Shown: piece after piece, positions 57,770-63,572 of the stretch
How positions within the stretch are numbered: position 1 is the stretch's first letter
Layout of the letters: every line of letters begins with the position of its first letter
Assembly: GCA_020891255.1 (NCBI GenBank)
Contig: BQFW01000003.1
Coordinates: 1,612,001-1,676,000 of the forward strand
Source of the DNA: Entomortierella parvispora E1425
Taxonomy: Eukaryota; Fungi; Mortierellomycota
Reading direction: 5' to 3'
DNA length: 64,000 nucleotides
Notes under the pieces: generated by a model
Seen by the model: only the letters and a program-made list of their open reading frames with translations
The model's database searches: none
Told to the model about the DNA's origin: nothing
Made by a program: the position numbers and the translations under genes

Positions 57770-58739
57770 TGTGGAGTTATAGACTGAGTATTCAGAGTAG
57801 TGTCAAGGGATGTTTGAGAAATCTCAGGTTGGTGCGACCCCTTTTATATATGCGAATCGGAACAGCAAAAATGGAACCTTGGAGAAGGACATAGAAAAGA
57901 CATGTCAAAGGAGGGACACCGAGGAAAGATGGGAATGCAGGAAAGACATGTCAGGGGAGGGACGCCGAGGAAAGATGAGAATGCAGGAGGTGAGGGATGT
58001 CCAAAAAAAAAAAGAACGACCAGGCCACTAAGGGTACAGAGTCACATTACTGAGAGTTGGGACGAGCATGGGCGTGGGAGAGCAAGGGCCCATGGCAAGC
58101 GAGAACACCTGGCGGTATCCTAACACCGAGGAAGGATGGAGAAAGATAGCAAAGAGCTGATAAAGAAGAGAAACATAAATAGGAGAGGGAGACGCTAAAA
58201 TAAAGGCAACGGATTCAGATGCTGAAAAAATGACGATGATGGATTAATGCAGAGTGAAAAGAGGCAGGGAGTACTACTGGATAACTGACTTGTGGCAGCC
58301 AAGCGCACATAGCGACGTTGCCCCAGATCCTTCAATGTCGGCTCTTTCCACCGTACTCAGGTTGCAAATGAAGGACTTCTGTTTTTGCTGGGAGGTGACG
58401 TGTGGGAAAGAAAAGAGTAGGAGCGGAAGGGAGAGTGTGAGCTGGAGGGAGGAAGGTAAAAGAAACGTGTGTCGGCGTCAGAGGTGGCTGTTGAAGTCTC
58501 TTGAAATAACGAGAGATGACGCGCCCGCCAGCTCGCAAGGTGCCACCAAAACGCGTCGAACGCGTCCAAGCCTGGAGCATCACTTACGGAGCTCATAGAT
58601 CTTGCTCCATGCCTACTCCCAAACTGATCGAAGAGAGTCTCGGTGTGTACACTGGCGTTATTGGGTACAACATGAATGTCAGTGGGAGGGCATCCCAACG
58701 ACTACCCGATACCCAACAAAATTTGCTTGCATCTCCCTC

Positions 58740-59120
58740 GACTAAGGACGAATTGATGGCCCACGCCCAGACACGCTCACTCTTTGGGCAAGTGCTGAAT
58801 GAGACGGCCTTGCAATCGTTGTTCCATCATTCTTGGAAGAATATAATATTACTGCTACACACGAAAAAGGATCCGGCCATGTTGTAGAGACATGATGCCC
58901 TTGGAACGCCACCAAACTGGATTTGTGAAGAACATGTTCATCAATGGATTGACAACGTCAGCGCTTATGGACAGGGCAAAGGGCAAAAAGTTCCCACATG
59001 TCTGTGTTTGCTGGACCAAGCCAAAGCATGTGACAGAGTCTGCCTGGGTTTTTGGAAGGCAACCCTGGAACATATGAAGCTTCCCCCTACGTTTAACAAT
59101 GGGATCTGCGATCTATATGG
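58740..59120 (+). pseudogene. Non-LTR (LINE) reverse transcriptase relic
   Basis: Joined frames: LFGQVL...SWKNIILLLHTKKDP...HQTGFVKN...ALMDRAK...LLDQAKACDRV...LEHMKLP, matching LINE RT N-terminal motifs including D(Q)xKAxD. Stops and frameshifts. Confidence 0.8.
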
Positions 59121-59970
59121 TATGGGCACTTGAGACCACATGCAGTACCACATCACATCTTGAGAATTCAGATAAGAAGAGAAACAAAAAAAAATCGCAA
59201 GATCAAGAGCAACATCGTTTTGAACTCGTAACTGCCCCTAGTCACAAGCCTCTTATCAGCGGTATCAACTTGTCCTCCTGCACCCTTCCCTTTTTCTTGA
59301 CTAAATTCTATGCATCTCTTTTTTTTTCTTTGTGTGTCTGTGTGTGCGTCGCGAACCCCTGGACCCCCTCACTTCGCTTTTGCTGTATCTGCGTATCTTT
59401 GTGTCCCCCAGGATCCCTCCTTTGTTTCCTACCCTGTGCTATTTATGTATTCTGTACTCGAGGTCTCTTGTCATCCTGTTTTGTATCCGCCTACTTAAAC
59501 AGGTCGAATCTGCTTCGAATCCTGCACGGAAACACAGCACCTTCCACCTCAAGACTTATCACAACTCTGGCCGCAACGCTCAGAGACACAATTCGAAATC
59601 TCTAAGCACACTCTTTTGTTACACCACAGCGAGGCCAGCCCCCGCATCAAAACGTCCACGTCCACGTTGTGCAGAAGTACCATTTTGCTTTTGGTAAGTC
59701 CCCTCAAGCTAGCTGCCCCACCATGTTAATTGACATCACCATTGTCTGATCGGACAAACCTTCTGCTCTACGCATCCTCTAGTACAAGTGCCCCCTCCTC
59801 CGCAGATCCATTCTTGGTCAACAAACTTAAACAGCCCACAAGCCTGACTCATCGCTTTCAACTGGTAAAGCTAAGATGGCCCTTTTGATGATTTGCTTCA
59901 TCTTGCAATGAAAGTGCATCAACTCACAAACTCTAGTTTATATTCTACTCGCGGATAACAATAGGGCACC

Positions 59971-61449
59971 ATGCATGTCATGTTTTTTCTGGCACTCCAA
60001 GTGCTGTCTCTGGCCATTTTGACGGTGTCTGGGCAGCCTGACCTATACAAGGAAATGCACGAGCAGGATCCTGTTTTAAAGTTGGTGGTCCCTTCTCCAG
60101 CTAGTCAAGTGATTCATCCAGGAACATTGCGGGATCAAGCTATGGAAGAGGTTTGCAAACTGCCATCTTGCACTCCTGACACTAATGCCAGCACCCAAGC
60201 CCATACATTCGCAACTGTGGGAATCGATACCGGATCCATGATGTGGGAAAATGTCACAGGGCAAGTCCTTGGATGTTGTCTGCCTCCCAACTCATCGAGT
60301 GCACCTCCTAGCTCTGAGATCTGCGGTATGTCTTGCACGCGTTTTGACTCGCAGTTACCACAGCAACCAAGGCAAGAGATTCCTGCTTTGCGCATCGCAG
60401 TCATTGCCCCTCCACATGAGGCAGTTCCACCCAAACTTTATGGCGGCACGGAACGCGTCGTTTCCTATTTGACCGAGGCTTTAGTGGAGCTGGGACATGA
60501 GGTCACCCTCTTCGCCAGTGGAGATTCGCAGACGAAAGCGACACTTCGAGCAACATGGCCGCACGCCCTGCGCTTAGATCCTTCGGTGCGCGATGCACTG
60601 GCGCCGGTCTTGTTAATACTCGAAGAGGTCTACCAAGTAGCAGACCAATTCGACGTATTGCATTTCCATTTGGATTATCTGCCGTTCTCTTTGTTCTCTC
60701 GCTCTCCAGTGCCCTTTTTGAATACTTTCCATGGACGACTCGATTTACCCGAATTGCAGCCGGTCTTCAATAAGTTCCCGCATGCACCGGTGACTTCTAT
60801 TTCAGATTCGCAACGCTCACCGATACCTCAAGCAAATTGGATGAGGACTGTGTACCACGGCCTCCCCGTGGACTTGCTGACACCACGACTGGACATTCAA
60901 CCCGAGTACCTGGCTTTCTTGGGCCGTATCTGTCCGGAAAAGGGCGTCGACAGGGCCATTCGTATCGCGGCACAATCGGGCCTGCCGCTCAAAATCGCTG
61001 CCAAAGTGGACAAAGCCGACGTGGAGTATTTTGAAACCATGATCAAGCCGTTGCTCGGGCAGGCCCATGTGGAGTTTATTGGCGAGATCAACGAAGCCCA
61101 GAAGCCGGCTTTCTTGTCAGGCGCCAAGGCCTTGCTGTTCCCGATCAATTGGCCCGAGCCTTTTGGTCTCGTCATGATCGAGGCCATGGCGTGCGGCACG
61201 CCTGTGATCGCGTTTAACCGTGGCTCGGTCCCGGAAATCATCGAACACGGGGTGACAGGGTTCATTGTCGAGGATGAACAAGGGGCCATCGGCGCAGTCG
61301 ACCGGATCGAGGGATTGTCACGCAGTGAGATTCGCACGCAGTTCGAGCAACGTTTTAGCGCGCACACGATGGCCAACCACTATCTGGATTTATATCAAAC
61401 TGTGATCCAGCAGAAGCAACATTCGAATTCGCGTCACGTAGTTGGATAG
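59971..61449 (+). CDS. GT4 (GT-B) glycosyltransferase of bacterial type with N-terminal signal peptide and Cys-rich extension
   Basis: RIAVIAPPHEAVPPKLYGGTERVVSYL, LAFLGRICPEKG, WPEPFGLVMIEAMACGTPV. 492-aa uninterrupted ORF. Hydrophobic N-terminus. Confidence 0.92.
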   Translation: MHVMFFLALQVLSLAILTVSGQPDLYKEMHEQDPVLKLVVPSPASQVIHPGTLRDQAMEEVCKLPSCTPDTNASTQAHTFATVGIDTGSMMWENVTGQVLGCCLPPNSSSAPPSSEICGMSCTRFDSQLPQQPRQEIPALRIAVIAPPHEAVPPKLYGGTERVVSYLTEALVELGHEVTLFASGDSQTKATLRATWPHALRLDPSVRDALAPVLLILEEVYQVADQFDVLHFHLDYLPFSLFSRSPVPFLNTFHGRLDLPELQPVFNKFPHAPVTSISDSQRSPIPQANWMRTVYHGLPVDLLTPRLDIQPEYLAFLGRICPEKGVDRAIRIAAQSGLPLKIAAKVDKADVEYFETMIKPLLGQAHVEFIGEINEAQKPAFLSGAKALLFPINWPEPFGLVMIEAMACGTPVIAFNRGSVPEIIEHGVTGFIVEDEQGAIGAVDRIEGLSRSEIRTQFEQRFSAHTMANHYLDLYQTVIQQKQHSNSRHVVG

Positions 61450-61717
61450 TTTTCATTCTTCTAAATAAAAAAAAACTAATTTGACTCACTCCTCCATTGG
61501 CACGTTTTGTTGGTTGCTGGAACGGCCAACATTGTTGATGGCAACCTTTGTATTTTCTTGCAAGTTAAGGAATTCTTCTTTATTGTCCAAGAACATTTGT
61601 AAGATCCAATCCTTGCTCCGGTTGGTGTATCCTTGTTTTTCGGCCACTGACTAGATGTTGTAAACTCTCCATAGCTACGTGTTGGTATGTGTTGTATTGT
61701 TGTTGTGTTTGTTCCTT

Positions 61718-63107
61718 TTAAGCAGAGCGGTTATCGAAGGGCTTGCGGTACTCGATCCTCTCGACCTTGACCTCTCCTTCGATCAATTGATATACATAAA
61801 GAACCACGACCGATCCCTGCAAGTCCATCAACACAAACGAAGGCGTCACGTCCCTAATCACAAAGAAGAGGGACCCCATGTTAGTAACGAGTAAAATTTA
61901 AGGCAAGCGAGAAGAAGAAGAAAAAAGAACATACTCAATTTGTGGGTGGAAGGCTCCTGTAGCGGATCCAGGGTTGACAAAGAACTTGCCCTCATGTTCA
62001 AAGGCCTCAAACTTGTGTGTATGTCCAGTCAACAAGATGTCGACATCCATCTGACGGGCTGTGATGTTGAGAGCCTCGGTATCGCCCCAAGGGATCACCT
62101 GGTGTCCATGCACAACGCCAATTCGGATCGGTCCATGTGTGATGATCTTTGAAAGAGGCCAGGAAGGGTTCTGGAAAAGAAAGGGGATGTGGCAAAAAGA
62201 AGGAAATGGGAAGACATATTAGAACATGAAAACAGAAAACGAGTCATCGACAACCAAGAACAGAGAGTCATGTGGACCATCAGCCTCTGAGAAGAAGAAA
62301 AGATGGGGGACGAAGCGAAGGGTCACGGTCATTACCTGGTCATAGTCTCCACGAACAACCTGGATATCGCCAGCGACAGATCTCAAATAGTCAAATGTTT
62401 CCTTGTCGCACACGTTTCCTGTAGAGATGATTTGTTGAATCTTTCCCGGAACCTAGTTGAGCGATTGAACAAAAAGACAAAAAGACAAAAAGACAATCCG
62501 CGTTTCGGAAAAAAAAAAGTCAGGAACTGCTTTGACCATATTTTCTTTCTTCTAGAGAGGTCCATGTCGAACAAAAAGTGTTTCCTTGCAGAAAATGACT
62601 CCTGGAATCGTGGGAGGAGAAAGCAGCCGAGCCTCTTCTTTTCGGGCTGTGGCGATAAAGAGTCACTCTGAACCATCCTACAAGAGGAGACAGGGATCTT
62701 TCAACATAGGGCTATCTCCTGCAAGATGTTTCTCCTCAAAAAGATCCTGAATGGCCACGCTGTTCTCTATGCTGTCAAGATGAAGCGGTACGGTTTGCAG
62801 AGGTATATTTTTTTGTCCACAAGGTAGTGTCGCTTGTCCTTTATCCCGCCGTTGCTCTGGCAGGTGCGAGTCCATGAAAAAGAGTTTCGATACAACCACC
62901 TTAAGAGGTAATGGGATAAGAAAGAAAGCAAACATACAAGCAGCTTCTTGAACTTGAGAGGCAAGTCATGAGCCCTGTTGGGAATGTGAAGGTCGCCTAT
63001 TACTAGAACTAGCTGATGCCATGAATGAAACAAGTTTTGTTAGAGATGCGGTTCAGACCAGAAGCAAGCAAGCATCAGATATACTCATAGACAGCAAGGG
63101 TTACCAT
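61718..63107 (-). CDS. VPS29: Retromer subunit Vps29
   Basis: ATG-only exon (63107-63105), [40 protein letters not shown]...VYVYQL...VKVERIEY. Four GT-AG introns. Confidence 0.95.
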
Positions 63108-63572
63108 GATGGAGTGATGGAGTCAGGTGCAATGTGTGTTGAAGAGGGGGAGAGAGAAGTAAAGAAGAAGAAGACGGGATGCGCCCAGGGACAGCCAACG
63201 TGCCATGTCGTCAACCTTTCTGGCCGCTGGGGGTCGATTCACAGTCACCACAGGGAACGAACGAACGAACGTGTCGTGTGAATGGTGAAGAGGGTCTTAA
63301 GGGGTGCTGCGAATGGAAGATATCTTGGCATGTTGCCACCAATCTAAAACGGAAGGTGTTGTCAATGAGGGAGGATCCCGACTTTGTTTATTGTGCAGTG
63401 GTGTGCTTGCTTGTTTGTTTGTGCGTGTGTGCATGGTGTCTTGGTTTTTTTGAATATAAAACAACTATTTATATAGCTAACTTTTTCTCCTTTTGTTATT
63501 CGCTCGCCGTGCGTGAATGGCTCTTTCTTGCAATATGATTTCAGAGTATGGAGGGTCCCGGGTAGAAACACC

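Follow-up and report, generated by a model that had tools for sequence, protein, structure and literature searches.

The window analysed here is a stretch of 64,000 nucleotides (nt) from the soil fungus Entomortierella parvispora E1425 (contig BQFW01000003.1 of assembly GCA_020891255.1, positions 1,612,001 to 1,676,000 of the forward strand), and the coordinates given below refer to it. At 59971..61449 on the plus strand the window carries a single open reading frame (ORF) of 492 codons, which starts with ATG and ends with TAG. The ORF is a complete chimeric coding sequence (CDS) and has no introns in those parts that are covered by RNA. A leader of 139 residues, which includes a putative signal sequence, either a peptide to be cleaved or an anchor (residues 1-21, 59971..60033, plus strand), and a disordered linker (residues 22-134, 60034..60372, plus strand), precedes a retaining glycosyltransferase domain of family 4 (GT4) with a GT-B fold (60388..61446, plus strand), which is of bacterial origin. 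The host gene VPS29 lies downstream on the opposite strand. In a word search residues 140-492 matched EMPS_02558 of E. parvispora with 100% identity; this protein is annotated with 592 residues (aa) and is encoded on a contig of 1.86 Mb.

The original prediction placed the beginning of the enzyme at 60388, where the frame reads TTG CGC ATC GCA GTC ATT GCC CCT (LRIAVIAP) after 417 nt, or 139 in-frame codons, and this reading of the letters is correct. The GT4 unit that follows was said to be complete, which is borne out by two Pfam domains, both above their gathering thresholds and in the usual N-to-C order: Glyco_transf_4 (PF13439) spans residues 157-264 with 46.6 bits (cut-off 28.5), and Glycos_transf_1 (PF00534) spans residues 310-452 with 103.3 bits (cut-off 26.4). 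No NCBIfam equivalog reached its cut-off for the 492-residue protein.

The relatives of the GT4 part are almost exclusively bacterial. The word search with residues 140-492 covered 5.8 billion proteins (fungal genomes without deposited proteins lie outside it), and the best 120 matches include only two eukaryotic sequences, namely EMPS_02558 itself (P0001) and a second protein of 492 residues, P0002, which is 89% identical to the GT4 part. P0002 is encoded on a 2.8-kb contig, L001, a Logan contig of run ERR15945747 that is 2819 nt long and aligns to window positions 59115-61531. The other sequences among the best 120 matches are bacterial, are mostly 351-356 residues long and are 72-76% identical over their full length; those with names belong to Burkholderia, Paraburkholderia, Caballeronia, Trinickia and Robbsia. 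Further named Burkholderiaceae loci and an alphaproteobacterial outgroup came, among the matches listed, from a scan of species-representative genomes. One of the metagenome proteins of the Joint Genome Institute, P0003 (406 aa), is peculiar in that its last ~50 residues repeat the preceding ~50 nearly exactly (GAVGALQRLDELSRTEIRAQFERRF...), owing either to a tandem duplication or to faulty assembly at the end of a contig.

Two phylogenetic trees were calculated, a quick one with 88 rows and a careful one with 45 rows. The two fungal sequences form a pair in both, with a support of 99 in the quick tree and 100/99 in the careful tree. The pair is joined, again with 99 and 100/99, by five bacterial sequences (P0004, P0005, P0121, P0122 and P0123), which are themselves monophyletic (95/91), and the resulting clade is positioned within a group of Burkholderiaceae proteins, designated group A, with a support of 95 and 97/93, respectively. 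The fungal pair and its bacterial sister clade have several derived residues in common, which were identified by eye in alignment A1 (PEKG, PINWPEPF, VEDE and MAN.YL). The resemblance to GT4 enzymes of the Burkholderiaceae, which the original prediction had proposed, thus corresponds to a position inside one bacterial family, and the proposed horizontal acquisition agrees with both the best matches and the trees, which do not place the gene in a fungal clade. The group A proteins, about 354 residues long, begin and end at the same positions as the GT4 part and constitute its direct source family. They are uncharacterised and have no leader, whereas the fungal protein has an N-terminal extension of 139 residues.

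Three of the five sister sequences are encoded on single contigs of 2.44 Mb (GCA_031963405.1), 2.64 Mb (GCA_031963445.1) and 2.96 Mb (GCA_031963415.1), and the remaining two are found on Logan contigs of one project of the Sequence Read Archive. The G+C content of the 21-kb loci is 45-47% in the sister bacteria compared to 62-66% in Burkholderia and Paraburkholderia. Mycoavidus cysteinexigens has a G+C content of 48.9-49.0% and a genome of 2,795,004 or 2,638,116 bp, and Mycetohabitans has a G+C content of 61% (PMC5877345). The low G+C content and the small genomes of the sister lineage are near the published Mycoavidus values and fit a Mycoavidus-like, Burkholderia-related endobacterium, which is somewhat more likely than not to have been the donor, and the link to Burkholderia-related endosymbionts of Mortierellaceae that the original prediction had drawn is consistent with these data. 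Two observations weigh against this identification. The fungal pair is the sister of the sampled small-genome clade and is not nested inside it, and a search with GcvT found no named Mycoavidus protein, the next-best match being at 68%.

The fusion was also examined at the nucleotide level. The bacterial genes of five loci (L002, L003, L006, L012 and L053), when aligned in an anchored manner, all read ATG CGN ATC GCA at their start. The fungal gene has TTG (Leu140, 60388..60390, plus strand) at the position of this ATG, and the same TTG is present in L001. The bacterial start region, which contains a Shine-Dalgarno element, reads AAGGAGATTGCCACT ATG CGC ATC GCA, and the corresponding fungal DNA reads CAAGAGATTCCTGCT TTG CGC ATC GCA. 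The 15 nt preceding the TTG (60373..60387, plus strand), which now encode Q-E-I-P-A, are probably a relic of the bacterial 5' untranslated region (UTR) with its ribosome-binding site. When they are compared with the 15 nt that precede the start codon in L002, the closest bacterial gene, 10 of 15 ungapped positions match, a score that is reached by only 0.1% of the 15-mers in the window; several bacterial references were compared, and the resemblance is suggestive only. The stop codon of the fungal gene is at the bacterial position and the similarity ends there. Since the similarity extends from the region of the ribosome-binding site to the stop codon, the retained insert corresponds to one gene of ~1.08 kb.

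After its arrival the gene has been adapted to its host. The G+C content at third codon positions (GC3) of the GT4 part is 0.62, which lies within the range of the long host ORFs in the window (0.54-0.68), whereas GC3 is lower in the sister bacteria (0.47-0.49) and higher in Burkholderia and Paraburkholderia (0.80-0.84). At the DNA level the GT4 part is no more than 70-72% identical to any bacterial gene. A comparison of the two fungal orthologues gives, for the GT4 part, a ratio of nonsynonymous to synonymous substitution rates (dN/dS) of 0.12 at a synonymous divergence (dS) of 0.51, and purifying selection on the catalytic domain is strong.

Three public runs of E. parvispora (X1, X2 and X3) were compared with window positions 58600-63400. 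Nothing from X3, a run of the same organism from 2020, aligned to this region. X2 behaves as RNA because VPS29 is present in it in spliced form, at a depth of ~820. Four contigs of X2 (59964-60212, 60194-60535, 60581-60932 and 61123-61459) align to the GT4 gene with no mismatches and no internal joints, leaving the CDS stretches 60536-60580 and 60933-61122 outside the coverage. X2 contig 3, aligned from 59964, carries 13 extra letters, ATCGCTTTCAACT, which match window positions 59851-59863. An intron of 100 nt with GT..AG borders (59865..59964, plus strand) has thus been spliced out, 6 nt ahead of the start codon at 59971, and its splice sites are kept in L001. The junction seen in RNA is the same as that in the annotated model (...HRFQL|GTMHV). 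The gene is integrated in the fungal genome and transcribed, and at least one of its 5'-UTR introns is spliced. The same contig runs from the upstream exon over the splice junction into the leader, showing that the leader is part of the mRNA. Transcripts thus begin upstream of the leader and not downstream of it, which the original prediction had named as a finding that would speak against it. The RNA depth on the GT4 gene is low, at 4-6 compared to ~820 on VPS29, and the X2 contigs do not reach the transcript's 5' end; both points count against the account of the locus favoured below.

The upstream exon of this junction (59783..59864, plus strand) is 82 nt long in both fungi and contains no ATG, although it is coding in the 592-residue AUGUSTUS model. 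It is preceded by a second intron of the annotated model with GT..AG borders (59694..59782, plus strand), which was deduced from P0001 and from the alignment with L001, and not from RNA. L001 preserves the splice sites of the two introns as well as the 82-nt exon that separates them. In the public model, EMPS_02558, the protein starts at the ATG at 59099, and three upstream exons that are taken to be coding add 100 residues (window 59099-59970). In L001 the upstream frame is interrupted by a stop some 30 codons ahead of the ATG that corresponds to 59971 and by several further stops higher up. Because the frame is closed by these stops, the upstream exons are most likely 5' UTR, the 592-residue model is most likely over-extended at its N terminus, and a length of 492 residues is supported. 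The spliced leader sequence of the mRNA is free of ATG over the last ~290 nt before the start in L001 and over the last ~337 nt in the window. The ATG at 59971 has a good Kozak context (ACC ATG, with A at -3), and as judged from the two sequences it is the conserved start, being the earliest ATG in the spliced leader of both fungi. At the other end of the gene, AATAAA and a run of A are found at 61466-61477, 16 nt past the stop; with the last RNA contig reaching no further than 61459, a very short 3' UTR is possible.

Among the solved structures the closest to the GT4 part is that of the cyanobacterial protein tll1591, or TeGSS (E-value 1.6e-92 in HMMER; 46% identity and a target-normalised TM-score of 0.85-0.86 in Foldseek). 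In the AlphaFold2 model most of the C-terminal domain has predicted local distance difference test (pLDDT) values of ~84-95, and all 50 listed Foldseek matches in the PDB are GT4 enzymes with a GT-B fold, which is built from two Rossmann-like domains. TeGSS and alr1000 (PDB 7FG9, 7FGA and 8X3Q) are α-1,2-glucosyltransferases that belong to the same GT4 subfamily and have the same fold and the same length of the catalytic unit. These glucosylsucrose synthases are leaderless and cytosolic, whereas the fungal protein has its N-terminal extension.

In TeGSS the residues Tyr18, Arg179, Lys184 and Glu256/Glu265 bind the diphosphate of uridine diphosphate (UDP), and the Y18F and R179A mutants have lost nearly all activity; the fructose of sucrose is stacked against Trp10, in an acceptor cavity that is lined by eleven residues (PMC9909042). 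The UDP-binding and catalytic residues are identical in the fungal protein, where in the numbering of the full-length chain they are Y157, R319, K324, E396 and E404. According to the HMMER alignment to 7fg9, Tyr157 (60439..60441, plus strand) corresponds to the catalytic Tyr18, and it is invariant in alignment A2, which comprises 34 sequences. Arg319 (60925..60927, plus strand) corresponds to the catalytic, UDP-phosphate-binding Arg179 in the HMMER alignment and in A2. The E-x7-E motif of retaining GT4 enzymes, which extends from E396 to E404 (EPFGLVMIE, 61156..61182, plus strand), provides the counterparts of Glu256 and Glu265, both invariant in A2. TeGSS residues Trp254, Arg117 and Tyr97 are likewise conserved, and most of the conserved residues are invariant in A2. 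The protein therefore most likely follows the retaining UDP-sugar transferase mechanism of this subfamily.

The acceptor side is quite different. In the HMMER alignment Trp10 of TeGSS, which contacts sucrose, is replaced by His, and among the residues of the acceptor rim Tyr70 is replaced by Ala, Glu74 by Val, Thr119 by Asp and Asn122 by Leu. Because these residues that contact or surround the acceptor differ, sucrose is unlikely to be the acceptor, and the filing of the protein as a glucosylsucrose synthase was rejected on account of these five replacements. The next-closest solved structure is that of BGluT, a UDP-glucose:tetrahydrobiopterin glucosyltransferase (PDB 5ZER and 9V0L; E-value 6e-34, 24-27% identity). 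BGluT is much more distant and uses another acceptor, but it shows that the clade glucosylates small soluble molecules. Taken together, the fungal protein is probably a still-active retaining glycosyltransferase with a GT-B fold, which would use UDP-glucose as a donor like tll1591 and BGluT, and its acceptor appears to be different from those of both enzymes.

The leader has the appearance of a secretory targeting sequence. Nowhere in the protein is hydrophobicity higher than at its N terminus, MHVMFFLALQVLSLAILTVSGQ, which contains no acidic residue. The Kyte-Doolittle maximum is found here in both fungi, with a mean of 2.4-2.6 for a window of 15 residues and of 2.2-2.6 for residues 3-19, and the hydrophobic character of the N-terminal helix is conserved in P0002. 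AlphaFold2 predicts a helix for residues 2-19. The putative signal peptide or signal anchor, MHVMFFLALQVLSLAILTVSG, ends at a proposed cleavage site, VSG|Q, which has small residues at -3 and -1, in keeping with the -3/-1 rule. Behind the helix the chain has a net negative charge (D, E, E and D against one K). The orientation of membrane helices is governed by the positive-inside rule, which, given a negative C-terminal flank and an N terminus without acidic residues, favours insertion with the N terminus inside and the C terminus outside, which would place the GT4 domain in the lumen. The linker that follows is rich in P, S, T and Q and resembles a stem region; pLDDT is below 50 for residues 35-135, there is no Pfam match, and the dN/dS of residues 22-134 is 0.79.

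No relatives of the leader (residues 1-139) were found in Pfam or in the metagenome scan, the word search returned only the protein itself, and the window contains no paralogous copy. The sole match in an exhaustive HMMER search was a WD40-repeat protein, which was rejected as a homologue of the leader because its E-value is inflated by the repeats. The matching stretch, 60190-60276 (residues 74-102, ...ATVGIDTGSMMWENVTGQVLGC), resembles one WD40 blade motif of P0255, a protein of 1351 residues, with 10 of 29 residues identical, and was matched 13 times; its IDTGS..WENVT core is conserved in the second fungus. The resemblance is probably due to chance, but the stretch could be a captured exon fragment. 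The absence of N-glycosylation sequons from the GT4 domain was considered as a sign of a lumenal location and dismissed as uninformative, because 72 of 86 bacterial homologues also have none.

The overall layout is that of the Golgi type II glycosyltransferases of eukaryotes, in which a short N terminus and one hydrophobic helix are followed by a disordered stem, with the catalytic domain at the C-terminal end. Fungal enzymes of this type mostly have a GT-A fold and are of eukaryotic descent. The catalytic domain of the E. parvispora protein, in contrast, is a bacterial GT4 with a GT-B fold, and its residence in the Golgi would be a prediction from the sequence.

Two explanations that would deny the transfer altogether have to be weighed against these data. 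The sequence could represent bacterial contamination or an assembly chimera, a suspicion that arises from the high identity to Burkholderiaceae and from the biology of the strain, as E1425 is the natural host of Mycoavidus sp. B2-EB. However, both the DNA and the RNA for the genome were taken from a ciprofloxacin-cured line derived from E1425, which was shown by the polymerase chain reaction to be free of endobacteria; the assembly, made from Nanopore reads polished with Illumina data, has 19 contigs, and the genes were called by AUGUSTUS with RNA evidence (PMC8759367). In the DNA run X1, possibly the source data of the assembly itself and in that case not independent of it, one short-read contig covers 58600-63400 at an even depth of 76 with no differences. 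A long-read chimera is excluded, since this contig spans the whole stretch with both gene junctions, and it runs across the VPS29 junction, for which the original prediction had proposed a check by spanning reads. A bacterial origin of the sample DNA is equally contradicted by the GT..AG intron spliced just upstream of the ATG, by the host-like GC3, by the low DNA identity to bacterial genes, by the loss of the bacterial start codon with in-frame extension of the ORF, and by the orthologue from a second run, which has the same eukaryotic 5' flank over ~850 nt, including the splice sites of both introns. Contamination or a chimera is refuted for practical purposes. The gene could also belong to an old, vertically inherited fungal GT4 family that resembles Burkholderiaceae proteins through conservation. 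No point in favour of this explanation was found, and it can practically be dismissed: apart from the two eukaryotic sequences, the best matches are bacterial proteins of ~354 residues; the fungal pair lies within one bacterial family with 97-100% support; and the RNA-covered parts of the CDS have no intron, while a bacterial ribosome-binding-site relic appears to precede codon 140. Horizontal transfer and domestication can thus be regarded as real with high confidence.

The location of the enzyme is less certain. It could have remained cytosolic if the helix is an anchor of reverse orientation (N terminus out, C terminus in the cytosol) or if translation is initiated mostly at the internal Met58, in which case the leader would be a by-product of the loss of the bacterial ATG. 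Several properties of the leader count against secretory targeting, and most of them fit this explanation. Its dN/dS of 0.76 at a dS of 0.27 is nearly neutral; the n-region has no basic residue; the h-region, with ~17 residues, has a length at the border of what distinguishes cleaved signals from anchors; and two of the three N-glycosylation sequons are not conserved, the one in WENVT being kept. The Cys-containing linker that had been noticed in the sequence is there, with six Cys residues, but only C62 is conserved in the orthologue, so that the idea of a conserved disulfide module has to be dropped. Met58 is conserved in both fungi, and the closest characterised relatives use cytosolic UDP-glucose and small soluble acceptors. 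Furthermore, we know of no lumenal GT4 enzyme in fungi, and lumenal activity would be unprecedented. On the other side, the frame has stayed open across three indels relative to L001, all of them in frame, at a dS of ~0.27; in both fungi Met1 is encoded by the earliest ATG of the spliced leader, with A at -3; the hydrophobic helix, which is the protein's hydrophobicity maximum, is conserved; and the net-negative flank favours translocation of the C terminus. We consider a cytosolic enzyme unlikely, and lean, with some reserve, towards secretory or lumenal targeting because of the conserved hydrophobic helix, the VSG|Q site, the negative C-terminal flank, the conserved start codon and the disordered stem. 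An extension of the secretory reading is that the symbiont-derived, host-encoded enzyme is sent back via the secretory pathway to the endobacterium or its surrounding membrane, where it would glycosylate a bacterial or interface molecule and replace or control a Mycoavidus function. The sister lineage resembles Mycoavidus, strain E1425 hosts Mycoavidus sp. B2-EB, a hydrophobic N-terminal leader has been gained, and in other eukaryotes host proteins do reach bacterial endosymbionts via the secretory pathway (review PMC12176269). However, the same review of endosymbiont protein import makes no mention of fungi, and the RNA came from the cured line, so that expression is independent of the symbiont. 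What speaks for such return targeting here is the leader and the donor's probable identity, and we regard it as highly improbable.

The most satisfactory account of the locus, which we consider likely as a whole, combines transfer, domestication, retained activity and a secretory leader. A single bacterial gene of ~1.08 kb, from its ribosome-binding site to its stop codon, would have moved into the nuclear genome of an ancestor of Entomortierella. The donor would have been a member of a Burkholderiaceae lineage, whose closest sampled relatives have low-G+C genomes of 2.4-3.0 Mb that resemble those of the Mycoavidus endosymbionts of Mortierellaceae. The bacterial ATG would then have become TTG, the reading frame would have been extended to an ATG 139 codons upstream, and two 5'-UTR introns would have come to lie ahead of it. 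The leader would insert co-translationally into the endoplasmic reticulum (ER) with its N terminus remaining in the cytosol. The once-cytosolic enzyme would thereby act in the lumen of the ER or Golgi, where UDP-sugars are present, be it in soluble form after cleavage or anchored as a type II protein; alternatively, it would be exported.

The neighbouring host gene VPS29 (61662..63012, minus strand) is convergent with the GT4 gene, is spliced and highly expressed, and was identified by a Metallophos_2 match, by its translation and by RNA contig 7. This contig has joints at 62170/62336, 62450/62936 and 63012/63105, corresponding to the removal of three GT..AG introns (CT..AC on the plus strand). 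VPS29 ends ~240 nt past the GT4 stop codon. The tail-to-tail arrangement with a spliced VPS29, from which the original prediction had concluded that the contig is fungal, stands on the Metallophos_2 match, the RNA-spliced introns and the 100% match to EMPS_02558 on its 1.86-Mb contig. L001 contains no VPS29 in the 414 nt downstream of its GT4 gene (L001:2406-2819), so the 3' neighbourhood in the second fungus is either different or more widely spaced, and the flank shared between both fungi is the 5' side only. No flanking repeats that would point to a mechanism of integration were found at the locus. Two 18-nt pieces of the 5' region (59177-59194 and 59311-59328) recur in reversed order on another X1 contig of 4.3 kb with the same depth, and a short dispersed repeat therefore seems to be present in the promoter or the 5' UTR.

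The context of the gene in bacteria varies. In free-living Burkholderia and Paraburkholderia the group A GT4 gene is located between flhC and an aquaporin gene, and in the small-genome lineage it adjoins a DUF2863 gene. There is no operon shared across the bacterial clades; the neighbourhoods differ and indicate no clear function. Two loci of small-genome bacteria (L002:507-6344 and L083:3840-6295) have tandem arrays of 3-5 genes for outer-membrane proteins of the OmpW family immediately upstream of the response-regulator, DUF2863 and GT4 genes. The Burkholderiaceae also contain a paralogous group, group B (L037:3464-10642, L039, L068 and ~35 other loci), in which a GT20 gene of the OtsA type, resembling trehalose-6-phosphate synthase, and a divergent exporter of the ATP-binding cassette (ABC) type are found upstream, and an uncharacterised ORF of 518-575 residues is found downstream (checked in L037 and L068). 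The ABC exporter is also found in the loci of Acetobacteraceae and other alphaproteobacteria. The neighbourhood, which is conserved for group B in Burkholderiaceae, may represent a system that makes and exports a glycosylated disaccharide. The GT20 neighbour recalls tll1590, a sucrose-phosphate synthase numbered beside tll1591, and the context hints at the glycosylation of compatible solutes or oligosaccharides. A group B copy (L053:8001-9065) has been kept in Candidatus Vallotia lariciata, whose chromosome has a size of 1.06 Mb, and this retention suggests that the function of the family is important in Burkholderiaceae.

The kind of event described here is already known. Burkholderiales, including Mycoavidus, are reported to be a main source of genes donated to Mortierellomycota (Ciach et al. 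2024, PMC11291939). In early-diverging fungi 33% of the xenologs have a predicted signal peptide against a proteome background of 7.7%, and fusions following the transfer are found in 100 of 829 xenologs (PMC11291939). The E. parvispora gene fits this pattern. The same study makes no mention of E. parvispora or of this GT4, with its leader, its change from ATG to TTG and its possible ribosome-binding-site relic, and the gene is thus a new, well-resolved case.

The steps by which a bacterial gene becomes a eukaryotic one are unusually clear at this locus: a single gene was transferred, its start codon turned into a sense codon, and a leader that has no credible relatives was recruited. In addition, 5'-UTR introns were gained, GC3 became host-like, and the catalytic part has remained under purifying selection. 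The analysis also corrects the public gene model from 592 to the supported 492 residues. If the leader does carry the enzyme into the lumen of the ER or Golgi, a bacterial GT-B enzyme of family GT4 would be at work in the fungal secretory pathway, and the glycosylation of the cell wall, of glycoproteins or of secreted metabolites could then change in a fungus that bears endobacteria. Should return targeting prove true, it would be the first case of an endofungal bacterium to which a protein is sent that derives from the symbiont but is encoded by the host, an early stage of organelle-like integration in a fungus. In either case, the locus provides a concrete gene for asking whether transfer from endosymbiont to host contributes to the symbiosis.

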